Shown: one piece after another, positions 49,197 to 62,766 of the stretch
Numbering within the stretch: position 1 is the first letter of the stretch
How the letters are laid out: each line of letters starts with the position of its first letter
DNA from: Setoptus koraiensis
Taxonomy: Eukaryota; Animalia; Arthropoda
Length of the DNA stretch: 64,000 bases
Direction of reading: 5' to 3'
Assembly (NCBI GenBank): GCA_048013815.1
Contig: CM106585.1
Coordinates: forward strand, 10,602,001-10,666,000
Made by a program: the position numbers and the translations under genes
The notes under the pieces: model-generated
Told to the model about the DNA's origin: nothing
Databases searched by the model: none
Seen by the model: the letters and a program-made list of their open reading frames with translations, nothing else

Positions 49197-49550
49197 CAGT
49201 CTCTTTTTAAAGTTATGTATTATCTCAGATATACCATTCTCCTCAAGGGATTTATCTCGCTTGGTCCATGCATATATGAGAAAACCAGAGAAAATACATG
49301 TTACAACGTATGGAACGAAGGTGCGCTGTTTTGCCACAAATCCGACAACATAGCCCTTTTTCATCTGTCCTAAAATGGTGACTGGCTTCTTGTCTCCAAC
49401 ACCACCATGTCTCGATTCATTTTTGTTATAAATATGAATACACTTAACCGGTTTAGTTGCTAATGAGGCCCCCTTTCTAAAGGCACTGATGTCGACAACC
49501 CTCAATCTGGTCAATTTAAATATCTGTGACCTCGCTTGTGTAATAAACAT
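49197..49550 (-). CDS. MRPL14: Mitochondrial ribosomal protein uL14m-like, incomplete or divergent next to the gap
   Basis: KLTRLRVVDIS...KCIHIYNK...GVGDK...GQMKKGYVVG matches mRpL14. The expected FDSNNVVLI segment is not seen, and similarity is lost after ~aa 80. Confidence 0.7.
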
Positions 49551-50174
49551 CCTCTCTTGGTTGATCCACAGTTGTATATATTATTCTTACATACCAACAA
49601 CCAATACTATTTTTAAAAGGACCATTTCATCAGATTAAATAATGTAAATACGGACCAAATATAGATGAGATAAGGCAATCAAAAATATCTTTAGTAGCTA
49701 TTGTTTTCGTTGCATTTATTTTAGTTTCAAGTTTATTCACATGTGCGCTCGATATGCGAGTAGCGCACAAAACATACGTTCATTGAGCATTCTTTGTGGT
49801 GCAAATCGCATGACACGTGGTTACCATCTTCAGCGAGTGGAATTTACGAATGTCGTAGTGTTGTTCCATTTATGAGGAGTCGTAGCTTGAGCCATCGCTC
49901 ACTGATCCCTGAACCTCACTGAAATGACCATCGAGATCAGGCACCCGTACATTTTGGACTTCAGATGTTTGTAGACTAGTTTGCGTGGCGACATCATTGT
50001 TATCGTCAATTAGCTGCGTCGACATCTTCGACGCGCACCATCTACTAACTTGATAGATTGAGGTCGGCCTGTAACCTCTGTCCATTCGAGTAGCGACTTT
50101 TTTATCACTGTCTGGTACAATGAATGGGCGGCCATTGGACTGTCGTCCTTGACATCTTCTACGTTGATACATGT

Positions 50175-50585
50175 TTGTCTTGGTTGGTTGGCTGTGTTGG
50201 TTGTTTTGGCCGGTTGGTTAACTTGGTTGGTTTGGTTGGTTGGCCGTGTTGGTTGTTTTGGCCGGTTGGTTAACTTGGTTGGTTTGGTTGGTTGGCCGTG
50301 TTGGCTGTGTTGGCTGTGTTGGCTGGTTTGGCAGGTTGGTTAACTTGGTTGGTTTTGCTGGTTGGCCGTGTTGGCTGTGTTGGCTGGTTTGGCTGTGTTG
50401 GCTGGTTTGGCAGGTTGGTTAAATTGGTTGGCTGTGTTGGTTGTTTTGGCGGGTTGGTTAACTTGGTTGGTTTTTTTGTGCTTTCATCGACTTGGTTGGT
50501 TAGGTTGGTTTGATTTGGTTTCGTTTGGCTGTTTGGTCAACTCGTTCAACTTGGTTGGCTTGGTTTGGCTTGACTTGCTCGGCTA
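50175..50585. repeat. Strand-asymmetric G/T-rich compound minisatellite (left arm)
   Basis: Units such as ttggttaacttggttggtttggttggttggccgtgttggttgttttggccgg (~52 bp) mixed with 9-18 bp subunits. Confidence 0.9.
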
Positions 50586-51116
50586 ACAAAGAAAAATAAC
50601 GATTAAAACATCTTTTTCATTGTTGTGTGTAACAACAAAATGGACTCCATTGTGATGACCAAACGGCGCCATAAGTTGCAAGTTGCCGAGTCCCGGTACG
50701 CCCCCCCTCCCCCAATCGGCATTTAGATCCCGGATTCACCCGCGATACCCGGATAAAGCGACACATATTTCAGTGTTAATGCACTCACAAGTCAGCCCGA
50801 AGTAGTTGCGCTCTGCTATCCGATACCGTGCTATTGTTTTGCTACTTGTGTTATTGCGAACATTTCACGGTTTATTCTCTTTGCACACACATGAATGCAC
50901 GATTGTTTCAGCATATTGCAGAAATTAATGCGTTTCGAGAGGCAATACTATTGATATCATAGGTGTCGTGCAATAAGAAAACCTTGCCTTTACTAATGTT
51001 GACACTGCGCCATCTTCGTTTGTAATTATCCTTTCTTGTTTATTTTGTAATAATGGGACAACGCAACAATTAGATAAGAAACAAGTTATAGCGATTCGAT
51101 CTGGTATCTAGGTATT

Positions 51117-52622
51117 ATGAAAAAATTCCTCCATCTTACTAAACGGCAACCGTCACTAGATCAGAGTGCAATCAATCGTAACGGTTGGCCAGGCGCAGAT
51201 AGATCAAATGGTAAATCTTTGCGTAGAGTATCAACAACAAACTTGACTACAAAAAACATACACATCGTTCGAGGAGCTTATAATATTGACCTCAATAAAG
51301 TTGATAACAGTTTCAACAAACTCCACAGGGCTTGCCTATTAAACGATGATATAAGAGCCAGGAAGTATATTCGTAAAATTGATTGCAATGACCAGGACAA
51401 TTCCAAACGATCGCCTCTGCACTTGGCCACAGTTAATGGGAATTTTTCATTGGTGAAATTGTTGATCGATAACAAGGCCAATGTTAATATAAAAGACAGC
51501 GATGGCAGAACGCCCTTGATAAAATCTATCGAATGTGGTCACGATCAGCTCGTTGAATACCTTATCCGACATGGTGCGAATCCAAACACAGCAGATTCCG
51601 ATGGTAACACGGCCCTTCATTGGGTTCTCATGACAGAATCTATAGTTGCCTTAAGCTATTTGATCGATTCAAATAAGTGTGACGGCAGTATTAAAAATAC
51701 ACGGGGAGAAACATGTCTACACTTAGCTGTTAAATGTCCACTGTTCAATTCACAAATCTATGAAGCTCTGATCAAAACAGGAGCTGACTTACATGCCAAA
51801 AATAACTTGGGCCTCACTCCTATCGAAATAGCCCAGCGTTCAAACAACACTGCCGCAGTTAATTCCTTAAACAAGCCTCCGAGCAAAAAACTAAAGAAGT
51901 CACCCTCTGATAACCATGGTAATCTAGTCAGGAAGATGTCTATGTCAGCTGAGGACGTCTCTCAAGTGAAACACGAGAGACGAAAATACTTCATCACGCG
52001 AAACAAGGATCAAGAAAGTACTGCCATAGAAGATTCAGATGATGAGCCAATCAGGGCTAGCAAGAGTTTCGAGGGATTCGATCCATCATTGAAGGACATA
52101 GAAAATTACGAGAACACAAATTTCCGCATCGGAGAAGATTTCACTCAAGTCACAAAATCTAGCAATGACGCCTACCTTAATAGTTACAATCAAAAGACGT
52201 TGATTGAAACTCAAAAAATATGCGATGAGTTCAGGAAAAAATTCAACCAAAAGAATAAAGATAATCTGGAATTGGAGAAAAAGGTGATCCATTTAGAGTC
52301 GGAATCGAATCATCTTAAGCTAGATATCACCTCAATTGTAGAGCAAAATAGGATTCTGGAAAATGAGCTAGAAAAAGTCCGTATGCTTCAAGCAACAGAT
52401 AGGCAGGAGTTGCAATCGTTAAAAACCGAACTTGAGAAATTGCTGGAAATCAACAGCGCCTTAATTCAAGAAAAACAGCAGTTGGAATCCGATTTGAAGA
52501 ATCTCCGTATGTCTGTTGGATCAGAGATCCCTTGTGAAGAAGACAGAGATTTCCACTCTACCAAGAATAAGTTACAAGAACAGATCAATGAGTTGAAATT
52601 TGAGCTCAAGTCTGAACCTTAG
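51117..52622 (+). CDS. Ankyrin-repeat + coiled-coil protein, ANKRD26/POTE-family-like (left arm)
   Basis: N-terminal KLHRAC, then RSPLHLA, GRTPLIKSIECG, GNTALHW, GETCLHLA, GLTPIEIA and a heptad-rich C-terminus. Confidence 0.8.
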   Translation: MKKFLHLTKRQPSLDQSAINRNGWPGADRSNGKSLRRVSTTNLTTKNIHIVRGAYNIDLNKVDNSFNKLHRACLLNDDIRARKYIRKIDCNDQDNSKRSPLHLATVNGNFSLVKLLIDNKANVNIKDSDGRTPLIKSIECGHDQLVEYLIRHGANPNTADSDGNTALHWVLMTESIVALSYLIDSNKCDGSIKNTRGETCLHLAVKCPLFNSQIYEALIKTGADLHAKNNLGLTPIEIAQRSNNTAAVNSLNKPPSKKLKKSPSDNHGNLVRKMSMSAEDVSQVKHERRKYFITRNKDQESTAIEDSDDEPIRASKSFEGFDPSLKDIENYENTNFRIGEDFTQVTKSSNDAYLNSYNQKTLIETQKICDEFRKKFNQKNKDNLELEKKVIHLESESNHLKLDITSIVEQNRILENELEKVRMLQATDRQELQSLKTELEKLLEINSALIQEKQQLESDLKNLRMSVGSEIPCEEDRDFHSTKNKLQEQINELKFELKSEP

Positions 52623-53646
52623 GATAAACATATCCATGACACACAGTTTTTGGATTTCAATTGACAAAGAAAAGCCACAAGGAATCAAGCATTTTCCTAC
52701 AAGAATTTCTGATTTATAGAGAACGCTTGAATTTCTATCTTCTTTCGTTCGTGCACTGTTTACTCATGAGGAGATTTTCTAACTAATTGAGAATCTAAAC
52801 CACCTGACTCAGGCGTTCCTTTTAGGGAGTTGTATTTCTCACTATTACGATTCGGAACTGAATTGAATATCTTCTTTTTGTTCAATTATGTAAAACCTTC
52901 AACGCCGTACGAGTGGTCATTGTTTGCAATCATTCTAAGTTGTAATCTTCAACGGTTGATTGAGATTAAGGGACTGCATTTCGGCGAGAGCTGACAAGAA
53001 CAACATCCCGCCATTCTCAATCCAAACATCTTGATCTGCGTATGTCAAAAGATGAGAATCAGTGTTGAGTAATGACCGCAGTCCAAGCTAATAATAAGAG
53101 GTTCCCTTTCGTTGGATGAGAGGAGCGGAAGCCCTATCCCAGATAGCGATAAAGGATGAATGCCTTTTTTGGTCACCCCAGATTCATCGATTCGATGAAT
53201 ATTTTTTTGAAAATTCCGCTGAATGATGACTGCGGACAGCACAATCTTTCCGTTATTACGAATGGTCGTATACCACAGTTGTCATTCGCGGACCTTTTTT
53301 CGTGTGCACCATCTTTTGCTGCACACAAGGATCAGTAAATTCATTCATCATGCGATTCCAAGCACAGAAAGTAATCTGTGAATAATGAGCACGTCTCTTG
53401 TAGCAATATCTTATGGGAAAATTGTTCCATGCGCTTGCGCTTCTAACTCTTAAGTCAGGTTCTGTGCGTAAATGCCGTTTTAGCACAAGATGCTGCTTAC
53501 CTGATGTCTTTATTTACGAATTCAAGTTGCGCGAATTTTTCACACTTGTTAGCGATTCGTAACATGGGACTGACCAGCTAGTGCCGTTACATCAGAATTA
53601 TTGTATAGCAATGTTTATGGTTTCTTAACATTTACATAATAACAAC

Positions 53647-54688
53647 ATGTTGAGCCAATCAAGGATTTCGTCAATTCTGAGGAGGGAGCGAAGGTCATCC
53701 GCCACTCGCGTTAGTTTTCGATAATAAGTTAACTCTACGAGAGTTACATGATGATGGGACATGTGAGATCACAAATTTGCTCTTAAAACAAGGCGACAAT
53801 ATTGATATGGACCTAACATTATTAGAGGTATGCGACCCAGAGAGCAGCATCTCATCTGATATGGAAATTTCATCAAGCACTATGGTCGATGCCTCGATGC
53901 ATGACAGAACTATGATGATGGAACAAACTCTCATGAATGAGTCGGTTTATAGTGAAATGACTAGTTTCAATTTGCCGAGTAATCTACAACAATCAATGGA
54001 AAATTCAATCTTGAGGGAATTCACAAACGACACTATCATGGCTGTTGATATCACAATGGACCGGAGTATACAAGATTCGTTAAAAGCAGACGCCTCTGTT
54101 TTCAACAAAGTTTTAGATGGTTTAAGAAGCCATGAGACGTCTTTATATTTCATCAACAAAAATGTACGAGTTCTCATATCTACTGATTACAATGACACGG
54201 TAACTGATTTAAGCTGTGAATTGATAAGTTCCACAATAGCCTCAGATAATTTTTACTCACAACTACACGCACTCAAAAATGATCTCATGAATGAAAAGTC
54301 CTCGAAAGTCGAGGTAATCAGATTGTTGAAACAACTGGAGATTCAAGCAAGAACTCTGGGTGCAGAAATCGACGCATTACAGTCATTCCATCGTTTTAAG
54401 AGAGTTGTAAGAGAGGGTGGCCCCTCTGATTTGGCCATCAAAATAAGAGGTCTAAGGTACCCCTTATGGCTCCTATTGACATATGACCCTGCCACATACC
54501 CTTATGAAGAAATTCACGTCAGATTCGCTGTAAATAAGATTGATCGTAGTTTATATCCTTTCACAACTTTCGCTAGTATTATCAAAAATACAACCAAGAG
54601 TGGACAACTATTTTATATCACTAGTTTGGTAGCAAGTGCCAAAAAGTTTATAAGATTCTACAAGAAATCACTCAAACACTACACATAA
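53647..54688 (+). CDS. KNL1: KNL1/Spc105-like protein (left arm; 1-bp T insertion near 53715 shifts the frame)
   Basis: Same sequence as 59196-60236 except ttagttttcg versus ttagtttcg. Confidence 0.6.
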
Positions 54689-55059
54689 CTGTACTTACAG
54701 CAGATTGATTATATAATACATACTAAACACAACCACAAAATGCTCAAAAGTTAGTTCTAAATAGACCCAATCTTACATAGCTCGGCATTTTTTTCCATGT
54801 ATAGTTTAGTGAGCTGATGGTTCCTCAGCGTTGATGGTTCTCATCAACCATTTATTCAAATAACTTTTACAGACAACAAAGATCTTACAATGTAAGCAAT
54901 GAAACTTTTTTCAATTTTTGTGTTATTTGACATCATTCTCGAACTCTTGTTGTTTGGATGATTCCATCGATTCTGTGTAACTGAACTTTAATTCTAGAAT
55001 AGAATTTTCAAAGTTTTGTTTTTGTTATACAAATAAAGCTTTATTTGGTTTATAATGGT

Positions 55060-56950
55060 CTAGGCGCGTGAAGACATAAGTTATTGAGTCGAATGCGGGT
55101 ATATGGTTCACACCGGAGTGCCCAATCGTGAAGACACTATCATAAGATACACGATGAGTCAACGTATGGGTATGAAGATCCTCACTTCTTCCAATTGAGT
55201 TAAAACTATGATTATTTGACGATGAAGAGGTGGAATGCAATCTGTTGTTCTAAGCTCACTCGAGAAGATATATATTCATACTCTTCGAGCAGTCGCAAAT
55301 CATCTGAACACACTATCAGGTATCTATTTTCTATAACTACAGCATCTGACAACTTAGTCAGGTAGTATGCTGTAACGCCATCACGGGCTCATGTCTTGAC
55401 CTTGAGTATCGTAAGCTTAGCGATCGCGTCTGCAGATGAATTGATTCGGAGTATAGTTTTACAAGAGTTTCTTGGAACTGTGTAGAGCTAGTAAAAATTT
55501 CGGATAATCGGGAGGATAGATGATACTTTTTGTGTGCCAATGATTAAAAGCTGTACAAATTATTACATATTCTCCAGGTTCTAAAATGACGCAACATCCA
55601 ACAAAGTTTCTGACAAGCCTTTGACTATTGTTGATCAGTTGCCCTATATCTGTCGAGTCCGGATCTTTTAAACTGGTGGATGCGCGAAATATCAAAATAC
55701 ATAAATCTAGTTGCTGAGATTGCGGACGCACTGATTGATTCAAATTGTTCTGGCAGTCCCTTCGACTAGATTGGAATAGGCTCAAGTCAATTTCTGTAGT
55801 TTCGTTCAATGTTATGATTATGTAAGGTAGATGGTCGCTATCACAGCTCTTTGTTGGAAATGTTCCTTCCAATCTTATCTCATTCCAATCTGGTCTGACT
55901 TTACAAATATCAATACAATCAAAATATTCGATGACATCTGTGAAACACATCCAAAATATGCCACCATCTGATCCATGGGGCATCAGCATAGACCTCAACT
56001 CTGGGGTCCATAAACAAGAGTCATCTGACCAATCTCCAGTCCAAGAGAAGTGGCCCCAAGGATTTCTTAGTTTTATAAGACGTAAATTATTTCCTTCATC
56101 TCTAACATCCATAACAGAATAAGCGTGCCGAGGTCTAAGACCCATTCGAGAGTATTTTTCCTCGTCGATCTCCATATTGCCACCGCCACAAGATGCTCCC
56201 ATAAGAAAACCAGCATCGCGCGAACTCAGTAACTGAGCCCAGATTAGGTCTTGATCTATTTCTTGATTTGCATGATTATGATCCTTAGTCTCAACGAGAT
56301 TGGTTGTTGTATCACCACTTTCCATTAAACGAGATGACGATGAAGCGGCAGGGGGCTGCAAGGTGATAGTCTCGCATGGAGCACCTGTCAGCGTGGCAAG
56401 GCCCTCAATGGAACGACCGGATGCTAATGACTCATAACATCCATGGATCTTGGCTAGAGCTTTTTCTATCAAAGGAACCCAGAGTTGTTTATGCTTTGCC
56501 TGGGAATACAGTAGATTGCGAAATTTATCACAAGGTAAAAGATCATCGATGAGTATTGTCTGCCATCTTCCGTCTTTGCACAGCCTGACTTGATATGCAC
56601 CTTGTGGGCATAGATCTCTAGTGATCATGACTCTTCTGACTAGCTCAGGTCTCTCGGCCAAGACAGCAAGGGCTGATAAGAACCAACAATTTCCGAGTAT
56701 GCCTTGTCGGATATCATTGGGAGTTGGAGTTCTAAATATTGTCCAGTTTAAATCGATGTCAAGTTGGTTGGTTCGTATTTGTTTGGGTCTCAACCACAAA
56801 CAATCTTTTACAATATCTATGATCTTTTGTTCTTCCAGCTCAACATTTCTTACAGGGTCCAGTCTGTTATCTATATTGTCATATTCCTGAGAACTTTGAC
56901 TGGTCACGTCAGCTATAGTTGTGTATCCTAATATGTATAATCTTTTATTC
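55060..56950 (-). CDS. CAPN15: Calpain-D/SOL (calpain-15)-like, left arm: catalytic domain intact, C-terminal ~400 bp riddled with deletions
   Basis: DIRQGILGNCWFLSALAVLAE (Cys), PRHAYSV (His), KLRNPWG (Asn). The frame stays open up to the palindrome centre. Confidence 0.88.
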
Positions 56951-56964
56951 TCCTGTTGATGTAG

Positions 56965-58831
56965 AGAGAGATATGTATAATATGTGAGGATTACACATTA
57001 CGCTGAGATGGCACGTCAAAGTTCTCAGGACTATGACATATAGATACAGACTGGACTGTAAGAAATGTGAGTGGAGAACAAAAGATCATAGATATGTAAA
57101 GATTGTTTGTGGTTGGACCAAACAACTCGAACACAACTAGACGATTAAACTGGACAATATAGAACTACACTCATGATATCGACAAGGCATACGGAAATTG
57201 TGGTTTTATCAGCTTGCTGTCTTGGCCGAGCTGAGATAGTCAGAAGAGTCATGATCACTAGAGATCTATGCCACAAGGTGATATCAGTCAGGTGCAAAGC
57301 GGAAGATGGAGAAATATCATCGAGATTTTACTTGTGATAAATTTCGCAATTACTGTATTCAGGCAAATGCTAAACACTCTGGGTTCTTTGATAGAAAAGC
57401 TTAGCAAGTCATGGATGTTATGAGTCATTAGCATCCGGTCGTTCCATTGAGGGCCTTGCCACGCTGACAGGTGCTCCATGCGAGACTATCACCTTGCAGC
57501 CCCCTGCCGCTTCATCGTCATCTCGTTTAATGGAAAGTGGTGATACAACAACCAATCTCGTTGAGACTAAGGATCATAATCATGCAAATCAAGAAATAGA
57601 TCAAGACCTAATCTGGGCTCAGTTACTGAGTTCGCGCGATGCTGGTTTTCTTATGGGAGCATCTTGTGGCGGTGGCAATATGGAGATCGACGAGGAAAAA
57701 TACTCTCGAATGGGTCTTAGACCTCGGCACGCTTATTCTGTTATGGATGTTAGAGATGAAGGAAATAATTTACGTCTTATAAAACTAAGAAATCCTTGGG
57801 GCCACTTCTCTTGGACTGGAGATTGGTCAGATGACTCTTGTTTATGGACCCCAGAGTTGAGGTCTATGCTGATGCCCCATGGATCAGATGGTGGCATATT
57901 TTGGATGTGTTTCACAGATGTCATCGAATATTTTGATTGTATTGATATTTGTAAAGTCAGACCAGATTGGAATGAGATAAGATTGGAAGGAACATTTCCA
58001 ACAAAGAGCTGTGATAGCGACCATCTACCTTACATAATCATAACATTGAACGAAACTACAGAAATTGACTTGAGCCTATTCCAATCTAGTCGAAGGGACT
58101 GCCAGAACAATTTGAATCAATCAGTGCGTCCGCAATCTCAGCAACTAGATTTATGTATTTTGATATTTCGCGCATCCACCAGTTTAAAAGATCCGGACTC
58201 GACAGATATAGGGCAACTGATCAACAATAGTCAAAGGCTTGTCAGAAACTTTGTTGGATGTTGCGTCATTTTAGAACCTGGAGAATATGTAATAATTTGT
58301 ACAGCTTTTAATCATTGGCACACAAAAAGTATCATCTATCCTCCCGATTATCCGAAATTTTTACTAGCTCTACACAGTTCCAAGAAACTCTTGGTAGAAA
58401 CTATAGCTCCGAATCAATTCATCTTGGCAGACGCGATCGCTAAGCTTACGATACTCAAGGGTCAGAGACATGAGGCCCGTGATGGCGTTACAGCATACTA
58501 CCTGACTAAGGGTTGGTCAGGATTGGCTGTAGTTATAGAAAATAGATTACCTGATAGGTGTGTTCAGATGATTTGCGACTGCTCGAAGAGTATGAATATA
58601 GTATCTTCTCGAGGTGAGCTTAGAACAACAGATTGCATTCCACCTCTTCATCGTCAAATAATCATAGTTTTAACTCAATTGGAAGGAAGTGAGGGATTCT
58701 TCATAGCCCATACGTTGACTCATCGTGTATCTTATGATAGTGGTCTTCACGATTGGGGCACTCCGGGTGTGAACCATATACCCGCATTCGACTCAATAAC
58801 TTATGGTCTTCACGCGCCTAGACCATTATAA
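56965..58831 (+). CDS. CAPN15: Calpain-D/SOL (calpain-15)-like, right arm: first ~450 bp deletion-degraded, SOH C-terminus intact
   Basis: The ORF ends GVTAYYLTKGWSGL...CDCSKSMNIVSSRGELRTTDCIPPLHRQIIIVLTQLE...GLHAPRPL*, typical of SOL. Confidence 0.88.
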
Positions 58832-59195
58832 ACCAAATAAAGCTTTATTTTGTATAACAAAAACAAAACTTTGAAAATTCTATTCTAGAATTAAAGTTCA
58901 GTTACACAGGAATCGATGGAATCATCCAAACAACAAGAGTTCGAGAATGATGGTCAAATAACACAAAAATTGAAAAAAGTTTCATTGCTTACATTGTAAG
59001 ATCTTTGTTGTCTGTAAAAGTTATTTGAATAAATGGTTGATGAGAACCATCAACGCTGAGGAACCATCAGCTCACTAAACTATACATGGAAAAAAATGCC
59101 GAGCTATGTAAGATTGGGTCTATTTAGAACTAACTTTTGAGCATTTTGTGGTTGTGTTTAGTATGTATTATATAATCAATCTGCTGTAAGTACAG

Positions 59196-60236
59196 TTATG
59201 TGTAGTGTTTGAGTGATTTCTTGTAGAATCTTATAAACTTTTTGGCACTTGCTACCAAACTAGTGATATAAAATAGTTGTCCACTCTTGGTTGTATTTTT
59301 GATAATACTAGCGAAAGTTGTGAAAGGATATAAACTACGATCAATCTTATTTACAGCGAATCTGACGTGAATTTCTTCATAAGGGTATGTGGCAGGGTCA
59401 TATGTCAATAGGAGCCATAAGGGGTACCTTAGACCTCTTATTTTGATGGCCAAATCAGAGGGGCCACCCTCTCTTACAACTCTCTTAAAACGATGGAATG
59501 ACTGTAATGCGTCGATTTCTGCACCCAGAGTTCTTGCTTGAATCTCCAGTTGTTTCAACAATCTGATTACCTCGACTTTCGAGGACTTTTCATTCATGAG
59601 ATCATTTTTGAGTGCGTGTAGTTGTGAGTAAAAATTATCTGAGGCTATTGTGGAACTTATCAATTCACAGCTTAAATCAGTTACCGTGTCATTGTAATCA
59701 GTAGATATGAGAACTCGTACATTTTTGTTGATGAAATATAAAGACGTCTCATGGCTTCTTAAACCATCTAAAACTTTGTTGAAAACAGAGGCGTCTGCTT
59801 TTAACGAATCTTGTATACTCCGGTCCATTGTGATATCAACAGCCATGATAGTGTCGTTTGTGAATTCCCTCAAGATTGAATTTTCCATTGATTGTTGTAG
59901 ATTACTCGGCAAATTGAAACTAGTCATTTCACTATAAACCGACTCATTCATGAGAGTTTGTTCCATCATCATAGTTCTGTCATGCATCGAGGCATCGACC
60001 ATAGTGCTTGATGAAATTTCCATATCAGATGAGATGCTGCTCTCTGGGTCGCATACCTCTAATAATGTTAGGTCCATATCAATATTGTCGCCTTGTTTTA
60101 AGAGCAAATTTGTGATCTCACATGTCCCATCATCATGTAACTCTCGTAGAGTTAACTTATTATCGAAACTAACGCGAGTGGCGGATGACCTTCGCTCCCT
60201 CCTCAGAATTGACGAAATCCTTGATTGGCTCAACAT
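59196..60236 (-). CDS. KNL1: KNL1/Spc105-like kinetochore scaffold, 346 aa (right arm, intact)
   Basis: SSILRR (SILK-type) and RVSF at the N-terminus; MDLT, MEIS and MEQT MELT-like motifs; a coiled coil; then an RWD-like end (LWLLLTYDPATYPYEEIHVRF). Confidence 0.72.
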   Translation of the reverse strand: MLSQSRISSILRRERRSSATRVSFDNKLTLRELHDDGTCEITNLLLKQGDNIDMDLTLLEVCDPESSISSDMEISSSTMVDASMHDRTMMMEQTLMNESVYSEMTSFNLPSNLQQSMENSILREFTNDTIMAVDITMDRSIQDSLKADASVFNKVLDGLRSHETSLYFINKNVRVLISTDYNDTVTDLSCELISSTIASDNFYSQLHALKNDLMNEKSSKVEVIRLLKQLEIQARTLGAEIDALQSFHRFKRVVREGGPSDLAIKIRGLRYPLWLLLTYDPATYPYEEIHVRFAVNKIDRSLYPFTTFASIIKNTTKSGQLFYITSLVASAKKFIRFYKKSLKHYT

Positions 60237-61260: not shown

Positions 61261-62766
61261 CTAAGGTTCAGACTTGAGCTCAAATTTCAACTCATTGATC
61301 TGTTCTTGTAACTTATTCTTGGTAGAGTGGAAATCTCTGTCTTCTTCACAAGGGATCTCTGATCCAACAGACATACGGAGATTCTTCAAATCGGATTCCA
61401 ACTGCTGTTTTTCTTGAATTAAGGCGCTGTTGATTTCCAGCAATTTCTCAAGTTCGGTTTTTAACGATTGCAACTCCTGCCTATCTGTTGCTTGAAGCAT
61501 ACGGACTTTTTCTAGCTCATTTTCCAGAATCCTATTTTGCTCTACAATTGAGGTGATATCTAGCTTAAGATGATTCGATTCCGACTCTAAATGGATCACC
61601 TTTTTCTCCAATTCCAGATTATCTTTATTCTTTTGGTTGAATTTTTTCCTGAACTCATCGCATATTTTTTGAGTTTCAATCAACGTCTTTTGATTGTAAC
61701 TATTAAGGTAGGCGTCATTGCTAGATTTTGTGACTTGAGTGAAATCTTCTCCGATGCGGAAATTTGTGTTCTCGTAATTTTCTATGTCCTTCAATGATGG
61801 ATCGAATCCCTCGAAACTCTTGCTAGCCCTGATTGGCTCATCATCTGAATCTTCTATGGCAGTACTTTCTTGATCCTTGTTTCGCGTGATGAAGTATTTT
61901 CGTCTCTCGTGTTTCACTTGAGAGACGTCCTCAGCTGACATAGACATCTTCCTGACTAGATTACCATGGTTATCAGAGGGTGACTTCTTTAGTTTTTTGC
62001 TCGGAGGCTTGTTTAAGGAATTAACTGCGGCAGTGTTGTTTGAACGCTGGGCTATTTCGATAGGAGTGAGGCCCAAGTTATTTTTGGCATGTAAGTCAGC
62101 TCCTGTTTTGATCAGAGCTTCATAGATTTGTGAATTGAACAGTGGACATTTAACAGCTAAGTGTAGACATGTTTCTCCCCGTGTATTTTTAATACTGCCG
62201 TCACACTTATTTGAATCGATCAAATAGCTTAAGGCAACTATAGATTCTGTCATGAGAACCCAATGAAGGGCCGTGTTACCATCGGAATCTGCTGTGTTTG
62301 GATTCGCACCATGTCGGATAAGGTATTCAACGAGCTGATCGTGACCACATTCGATAGATTTTATCAAGGGCGTTCTGCCATCGCTGTCTTTTATATTAAC
62401 ATTGGCCTTGTTATCGATCAACAATTTCACCAATGAAAAATTCCCATTAACTGTGGCCAAGTGCAGAGGCGATCGTTTGGAATTGTCCTGGTCATTGCAA
62501 TCAATTTTACGAATATACTTCCTGGCTCTTATATCATCGTTTAATAGGCAAGCCCTGTGGAGTTTGTTGAAACTGTTATCAACTTTATTGAGGTCAATAT
62601 TATAAGCTCCTCGAACGATGTGTATGTTTTTTGTAGTCAAGTTTGTTGTTGATACTCTACGCAAAGATTTACCATTTGATCTATCTGCGCCTGGCCAACC
62701 GTTACGATTGATTGCACTCTGATCTAGTGACGGTTGCCGTTTAGTAAGATGGAGGAATTTTTTCAT
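61261..62766 (-). CDS. Ankyrin-repeat + coiled-coil protein, ANKRD26/POTE-family-like (right arm)
   Basis: Translation identical to 51117-52622. Confidence 0.8.
   Translation of the reverse strand: MKKFLHLTKRQPSLDQSAINRNGWPGADRSNGKSLRRVSTTNLTTKNIHIVRGAYNIDLNKVDNSFNKLHRACLLNDDIRARKYIRKIDCNDQDNSKRSPLHLATVNGNFSLVKLLIDNKANVNIKDSDGRTPLIKSIECGHDQLVEYLIRHGANPNTADSDGNTALHWVLMTESIVALSYLIDSNKCDGSIKNTRGETCLHLAVKCPLFNSQIYEALIKTGADLHAKNNLGLTPIEIAQRSNNTAAVNSLNKPPSKKLKKSPSDNHGNLVRKMSMSAEDVSQVKHERRKYFITRNKDQESTAIEDSDDEPIRASKSFEGFDPSLKDIENYENTNFRIGEDFTQVTKSSNDAYLNSYNQKTLIETQKICDEFRKKFNQKNKDNLELEKKVIHLESESNHLKLDITSIVEQNRILENELEKVRMLQATDRQELQSLKTELEKLLEINSALIQEKQQLESDLKNLRMSVGSEIPCEEDRDFHSTKNKLQEQINELKFELKSEP

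Follow-up and report, generated by a model that had tools for sequence, protein, structure and literature searches.

A single-exon gene of 346 codons from an intron-poor mite is, with a probability that we put at roughly 0.85, an ortholog of the kinetochore protein KNL1/Spc105, carrying PP1 motifs, a few MELT-like motifs and a C-terminal RWD domain. A very small KNL1 had been proposed at this locus in a preliminary description of the DNA, and the proposal is borne out by motifs conserved across a protein family, by an RWD fold that has human KNL1 among its best matches and by sequence homology established in two steps. We refer to the gene and its product as mini-KNL1, and to the whole stretch of 64,000 nucleotides that was analysed as the window. 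The source organism is probably an eriophyoid mite. The window is gene-dense and intron-poor, with animal-type proteins, and belongs to an assembly of 48.8 Mb in two contigs; these features fit the eriophyoid genome described in PMC7738191, which is streamlined and intron-poor and comes from a group whose chromosomes are purportedly holocentric.

The preliminary description had reported a 346-aa ORF in one exon, naming no strand. This ORF is present and intact on the minus strand, and the motifs that had been read in it all lie at the residues given for them. A second copy is found in the other arm of an inverted duplication:

59196..60236, minus strand: mini-KNL1 ORF, copy 1, intact from ATG to stop, 346 aa, single exon (ORF and constraint evidence)
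53647..54688, plus strand: mini-KNL1 copy 2, in the other duplication arm, identical to copy 1 except for one extra T, frame broken after codon 24

The open frame around the ORF of copy 1 amounts to only 352 codons, so that an in-frame stop must lie about 5 codons upstream of the ATG. The closest ortholog (P0001, encoded at locus L001 of a public sequencing run) is 342 aa long and 90% identical in protein sequence. DNA identity to this ortholog is about 84% within the ORF, where all three indels are multiples of three, and similarity is lost just before the ATG and after the stop. The dN/dS ratio relative to the same close ortholog (Nei-Gojobori) is 0.048 overall and 0.016 at aa 1-60; residues 61-160 are presumably disordered, yet their ratio is 0.04. 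The ORF is thus a genuine protein-coding gene under strong purifying selection, and the single-exon model is consistent with the data, with no sign of missing exons. The particularly low value at aa 1-60 would be consistent with the N-terminal motifs forming the functional core. Rfam gave no match within the 64-kb window.

A profile of the family described below has two matches in the 48.8-Mb assembly, namely the two copies in the window, and a six-frame genome search with the Pfam models Spc7 and Knl1_RWD_C, which is not very sensitive, returned no match. The longer or second KNL1 that, according to the preliminary description, would have spoken against its proposal was therefore found in the genome neither with the family profile nor with these two models. 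The copies sit in the arms (49197-56939 and 56976-64616) of an inverted duplication of about 7.7 kb, separated by a spacer of about 36 bp, the second arm running 616 bases past the window end. Besides mini-KNL1, the duplication contains an ankyrin/coiled-coil gene and the 3' part of a calpain gene:

51117-52622, plus strand, and 61261-62766, minus strand: two 501-aa ORFs, one per arm, with ankyrin repeats followed by a long coiled-coil tail
55022-56920, minus strand, and 56993-58860, plus strand: calpain gene, frameshifted in both arms by single-base gaps

Across the KNL1 and ankyrin genes the two arms hardly differ. Near the centre they show many single-base gaps, almost all of them C's missing from the plus strand and falling into two patches (about 54930-55460 and 57000-57410). 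The extra T of copy 2 is located in a T-run right after the RVSF codons. The inverted duplication looks like an assembly artefact, arising from a noisy long-read consensus at a fold-back join or from low coverage, rather than like a real palindrome. The contig of the P0001 ortholog is free of it. A calpain neighbour is common to this close ortholog only and is absent beside the gene in two more distant relatives. The window calpain lacks the first ~140 codons in both arms, the relative's calpain being a 773-aa protein with Peptidase_C2 and CalpD_C domains; a DNA search of the assembly with the relative's flank, which comprises the calpain 5' end, a U3_assoc_6 gene and another gene of 143 aa, remained without a match and is uninformative.

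Relatives of mini-KNL1 were collected by an exhaustive search of 1.8 billion representative proteins, which yielded 22 sequences ranging from 141 to 896 aa; for 14 the E-value was 1e-10 or better. A word-index search (protein, then alignment) returned the 90% ortholog, one relative already known and a single new one. The relatives come from streamlined, mite-like genomes, and the sole named one is a 458-aa RefSeq model of the spider mite Panonychus citri, XP_053208835.1, called "uncharacterized protein". With this otherwise unnamed mite family mini-KNL1 has an N-terminal cassette and a second RWD domain (RWD-C) in common, at 22-41% identity. In the alignment, the N-terminal part comprises a basic patch, RSSIL[KR], some ten residues, R(T)VSF and a hydrophobic pair, then a block EL..DGT..T that often ends in CDIT or CEIT, and three MELT-like motifs at conserved positions (MDLT, [VI]DMS and [MI][DE][LM]T). 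The C-terminal domain, of about 110 aa, is well conserved, contains a P.TYP motif and is preceded by a variable linker.

Two subgroups can be recognized. The short one (300-500 aa, on compact intron-poor contigs) has a serine-rich linker in the place of the first RWD domain (RWD-N), while members of the long one, up to 896 aa, have a clear beta-rich RWD-N ahead of the helices and match human KNL1 directly. The longer relatives display the full KNL1 layout: SILK/RVSF, many motifs of the DVTM/MDIT type and a tandem RWD. The RWD-C of mini-KNL1 resembles that of the short subgroup, and its helices align with those of the long subgroup without insertion. One 181-aa relative (P0021) consists of an LSM domain fused to a KNL1 RWD-C fragment; an LSM gene (L007 5115-5492) adjoins the KNL1 gene in another relative's contig, and the fusion is probably a gene-calling or assembly chimera.

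None of the KNL1-related Pfam models recognizes this family. On mini-KNL1 itself, Spc7, Knl1_RWD_C and MELT all stay below threshold, and no KNL1 model exceeds it on any relative, one of which grazes Knl1_RWD_C (E 0.0079). The expectation in the preliminary description that standard annotation would miss such a gene has thus come true, both in Pfam and in the uninformative name of the Panonychus citri homolog.

The link to KNL1 at the sequence level was obtained with profiles. When PDB sequences were searched with a profile of the whole family, the best match was human KNL1 (8q5h_K, E 0.0017), and 4nf9 and 4nfa followed at about 0.01. With a C-terminal profile built from eight longer members, human KNL1 occupied the top four rows (5e-6, 6e-6, 3.6e-4 and 0.012), the alignments spanning the first RWD-N strands and the connecting helices. 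The same longer-member profile matches mini-KNL1 at 5e-32 over residues 181-341; profile-profile comparison with the longer members gives a probability of 99.2% from residue 196 on, and direct comparisons of mini-KNL1 with longer relatives give E-values of 1e-11 to 1e-4. A C-terminal profile of all members (A4) performed weakly against PDB (Spc24 0.026, KNL1 0.14): its signal is diluted by the short members devoid of RWD-N, and the long-member profile alone succeeded. At the level of sequence, homology to human KNL1 is hence reached in two steps, each of them solid, with the Pfam models remaining below threshold. A single-sequence PDB search had also matched aa 162-265 to a helical toxin of the NheA/Hbl type (4k1p_A, E 1.1e-4); this match was absent from three profile searches and from both fold searches, and was for that reason treated as chance helical similarity and rejected.

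The C-terminal part of the protein was modelled with AlphaFold2. A single-sequence model was unusable (mean pLDDT 35); with a 24-sequence alignment, aa 220-346 were modelled at pLDDT 83-94 as a long helix, four strands and three helices. The module is made up as follows:

59496..59651, minus strand: two long helices, aa 196-247, homologous to the RWD-N helix and linker helix of KNL1 according to the profiles and the model
59199..59495, minus strand: RWD-C domain, aa 248-346, four strands then helices, with the P.TYP motif, pLDDT 83-94 (model and fold searches)

The motif reads ATYPYEE at aa 282-288. In a structural search independent of Foldseek, human KNL1 from the KMN complex (8ppr_K) came first with Z 9.4, residues 193-344 of the model superposing on 2182-2342 of the chain, followed by the RWD domain of GCN2 (Z 9.3), human KNL1 4nf9_A (Z 9.3) and further RWD domains (Z 8.5-9.0). 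In Foldseek, the RNF25 RWD domain took rank 1 and KNL1 accounted for ranks 2, 4, 5 and 6 (E-values around 0.01-0.05). As judged from the model, the C-terminal fold is an RWD, equivalent to the second RWD of KNL1. Since generic RWD domains score on a par with KNL1, the fold by itself does not point to KNL1 specifically, and the assignment to KNL1 is based on the combination of fold, sequence profiles and N-terminal motif order. Indeed, the generic RWD domains of GCN2, RWDD1 and RNF25 have the same fold (Z 8.6-9.3) and a YP-type motif in the loop after strand 3, but these proteins show no sequence-level match and have no N-terminal part with SILK, RVSF and MELT motifs.

The RWD-like C-terminus announced in the preliminary description is accordingly present, in the model and in both fold searches; lack of the fold had been named there as grounds for rejection. 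Of the two RWD domains of KNL1, the second one (RWD-C) can be demonstrated, but the beta-sheet of RWD-N was not detected. The helices that the preliminary description had called a coiled coil, at about 200-247, pair in the alignments with the helices of the KNL1 RWD module and not with the coiled coil in front of it.

One further segment precedes the helices:

59652..59753, minus strand: possible remnant of the RWD-N beta-sheet, aa 162-195 (beta-prone sequence, placement by MAFFT)

Residues 162-195 are beta-prone, and in the MAFFT alignment they face the strands with which RWD-N begins in the longer relatives. AlphaFold2 models them as coil with pLDDT 30-40, and both profile and profile-profile alignments to relatives bearing RWD-N begin only at aa 181-196, i.e. 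in its helix. A reduced RWD-N sheet in this segment is possible from the sequence. Helices are also predicted at aa 111-130 and 139-161, with pLDDT below 55, and any counterpart of a Zwint-type coiled coil would correspond to these low-confidence helices at 111-161. With both the RWD-N sheet and a long Zwint-type coiled coil undetectable, RWD-C may provide most of the anchoring. RWD-N of human KNL1, as seen in the KMN structure, binds the C-terminal tail of NSL1, an interaction that dominates the affinity, while RWD-C docks on the MIS12C stalk via R2248 and W2249; both RWD domains are required for KNL1 recruitment in human cells (10.1101/2023.08.07.552234). F247 of mini-KNL1, an aromatic residue conserved in the family, lies opposite human W2249 in the profile alignments, which are weak, and would fit a kept contact with the MIS12C stalk.

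The N-terminal half of the protein carries the predicted signalling motifs:

60198..60215, minus strand: SSILRR, aa 8-13, predicted SILK-type PP1-docking motif within the basic patch RRERR; RSSIL[KR] in most relatives
60165..60176, minus strand: RVSF, aa 21-24, predicted RVxF-type PP1-docking motif; R(T)VSF in 15 relatives
60111..60143, minus strand: ELHDDGTCEIT, aa 32-42, block after RVSF that ends in the MELT-like CEIT; family consensus EL..DGT...T
60066..60077, minus strand: MDLT, aa 54-57 (DMDLT 53-57), MELT-like motif 1, the best conserved in the alignment of relatives
60012..60023, minus strand: MEIS, aa 72-75 (DMEIS 71-75), MELT-like motif 2; family form [VI]DMS
59955..59966, minus strand: MEQT, aa 91-94, aligned with the third MELT-like motif of the family; family form [MI][DE][LM]T-L
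59829..59840, minus strand: VDIT, aa 133-136, fourth MELT-like motif, otherwise present only in the 90% ortholog; no clear conservation in more distant relatives

The hydrophobic pair ahead of the ELHDDGTCEIT block may represent the phi-phi contact with PP1. Tetrapeptides fitting the MELT-like pattern [MILVFC][DE][MILV][ST] number four in mini-KNL1, against 0.8 expected (P ~0.008, 5000 shuffles); the fact that the MELT-like motifs keep their position across about 15 relatives carries more weight than this count. The motifs are short and form no repeat array, and two of them, MEIS and MEQT, are off consensus. A second SILR occurs in mini-KNL1 at aa 120-123 and is not followed by RVSF. In long relatives a SILK/RVSF-like cassette occurs a second time, internally, after the MELT-like region and before the RWD domains (RRSIL...SRMSF at aa ~315-330 of P0022; RRLTL...SRVSF at aa ~243-258 of P0023).

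Two candidate kinetochore partners were recovered in the genome, on different contigs:

G000:C1:17295450-17295791 (L005 1471-2652): Nuf2 ortholog, single 393-aa ORF (Pfam Nuf2, E 1e-13)
G000:C2:6646425-6646790 (L008 880-1941), minus strand: small gene of the Mad3/BUB1 type, open frame of about 353-364 aa, TPR domain (Mad3_BUB1_I, E 5e-29)

The shortened outer kinetochore envisaged in the preliminary description is not supported, a Nuf2 ORF of 393 aa being not strikingly short. Six-frame Pfam searches of the genome gave no match for Mis12, Nnf1, the CH domain of Ndc80 (Ndc80_HEC), Spc25 or the Bub3-binding GLEBS family (Mad3_BUB1_II). Given how divergent KNL1 itself is, these negatives are weak, and since Nuf2 and Mad3_BUB1_I were found, they are more likely to reflect divergence or a loose pre-filter than absence; the partners that escaped the search may be as divergent as KNL1.

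By analogy with studied KNL1 proteins, mini-KNL1 would work as follows. The RWD-C and the helices preceding it (module aa 196-346) would dock the protein on the Mis12 complex. The basic patch at aa 1-45, with its SILK-type and RVxF-type motifs, would dock PP1, and perhaps bind microtubules. Between these two ends, the predicted disordered stretch at aa 39-136 would present MELT-like motifs, three of them conserved in the family and one or two additional, whose Thr or Ser residues, once phosphorylated by a checkpoint kinase, would recruit Bub3 together with proteins of the BUB1/BUBR1 type. PP1 recruited by the SILK/RVSF cassette would then remove the phosphates and silence the signal upon microtubule attachment. 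We infer each of these activities (PP1 binding, phosphorylation, Bub3 recruitment, Mis12 docking and localisation at the kinetochore) from the known family. A broader proposal, which we hold only tentatively and at well below even odds, is that eriophyoid mites, and to a lesser extent other acariform mites, segregate their chromosomes with a natural minimal KNL1 that combines a single PP1 cassette with three or four motifs for Bub recruitment and just one functional RWD, having given up the link between the NSL1 tail and RWD-N and the Zwint coiled coil, both of which human cells require. If true, this would mean a different mode of anchoring, possibly tied to holocentric chromosomes and to extreme genome streamlining.

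Three other explanations deserve to be weighed. The ORF might be a fragment, either a single exon out of a longer gene or a duplicate cut short by local rearrangement, as its location within a 7.7-kb inverted duplication next to a frameshifted twin could suggest. This is very improbable: an independent relative, whose contig shows no duplication, has the same start and stop, an in-frame stop immediately precedes the ATG, the SILK motif lies, as it does in the relatives, among the first 25 residues, and relatives in other compact genomes measure 300-500 aa, the RefSeq model from Panonychus having 458. Nor do we give much credit to the view that the protein is a lineage-specific RWD protein other than KNL1, e.g. 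an adaptor with a PP1-docking N-terminus arisen by chance and acting away from the kinetochore, which appears quite improbable to us. That the fold search gives generic RWD domains scores equal to those of KNL1, that no Pfam KNL1 model matches and that RWD-N goes undetected would all be accounted for in this way. By contrast, it leaves unexplained why the best PDB sequence match of both family profiles is human KNL1, with nothing else of substance, why the longer relatives carry the full KNL1 layout, why the motifs are in the order found in KNL1, and why the genome searches turned up no other KNL1 candidate.

The remaining explanation concerns function rather than descent. Mini-KNL1 could be a KNL1 by origin that now retains only the PP1 and anchoring modules, its MELT-like motifs being non-functional leftovers of a checkpoint since reduced or rewired. 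Holocentric Cuscuta, in which KNL1 truncation accompanies checkpoint decay, provides a precedent (PMC10214151), and the presence of just three or four short motifs, two of them off consensus, together with the absence of the GLEBS family from the six-frame search results, points in the same direction. We consider this unlikely, although it deserves to be kept in mind, since the region bearing the motifs is under very strong purifying selection (dN/dS 0.016-0.04), three of the motifs hold their position in relatives that are about 30% identical, and the genome has a Mad3/BUB1 TPR gene.

An ortholog of KNL1 that has kept its signalling motifs is the reading we retain. Microtubule attachment, the spindle checkpoint and the silencing of that checkpoint are all coupled through KNL1, which acts as a hub. 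The KNL1 proteins studied so far are difficult to dissect, being large, repetitive and for the most part disordered. With its 346 aa and conserved motifs under strong selection, this natural KNL1 offers a view of what evolution holds indispensable. It is also a natural counterpart to the mini-KNL1 constructs that have been engineered for human cells, and its small size is suited to biochemistry and structural work; such a natural minimal scaffold, whose function is predicted, should be of use to kinetochore specialists. Should the loss of RWD-N be real, the two-point attachment to the Mis12 complex would not be universal. Furthermore, the family being unannotated in mite genomes, kinetochore inventories that call KNL1 absent from mites would be wrong. 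Our literature search found no paper on a mite KNL1. What is new is the extent of the reduction with all the signalling motifs kept, in a family that annotation has left unnamed, and, apparently, the loss of RWD-N.

Compared with human KNL1/CASC5, Drosophila Spc105R, Spc105/Spc7 of yeasts and C. elegans KNL-1, mini-KNL1 has the same architecture: SILK and RVSF motifs in a basic N-terminal region, a disordered stretch with MELT-like motifs, helices and a C-terminal RWD. It differs from them in its length of 346 aa, in having three or four MELT-like motifs with no repeat array and no KI motifs that we could see, in its undetectable RWD-N beta-sheet, in a long coiled coil that is not confidently predicted and in Pfam scores below threshold. 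Known KNL1 proteins measure about 900-1400 aa in yeast and worm and about 2000-2300 aa in fly and human, so that mini-KNL1 is about a third or less of the size of those studied. Both the length of KNL1 and its number of MELT motifs, from 0 to about 35 repeats, vary widely (PMC4558858), and mini-KNL1 is therefore a variant within a known family and not a new system. It also conforms to the way in which Tromer et al. 2015 (PMC4558858) delimited orthologs: SILK and RVSF motifs occur at the N-terminus (SSILRR and RVSF, both conserved in the family as judged from sequence), MELT-like motifs populate the middle region, predicted to be disordered, three of them at conserved positions in the relatives, and an RWD-C was found at the C-terminus by AlphaFold2, structural search and Foldseek. 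The genome searches described above recovered a single family member apart from the frameshifted copy. A parallel for the reduction is Cuscuta, a holocentric plant lineage with a truncated KNL1 that has lost its kinetochore localisation and with a decayed checkpoint (PMC10214151). The two cases are alike in that a shortened KNL1 occurs in a lineage reported to be holocentric, eriophyoid mites being purportedly so (PMC7738191); they differ in that the signalling motifs of mini-KNL1 have been kept, under strong purifying selection.
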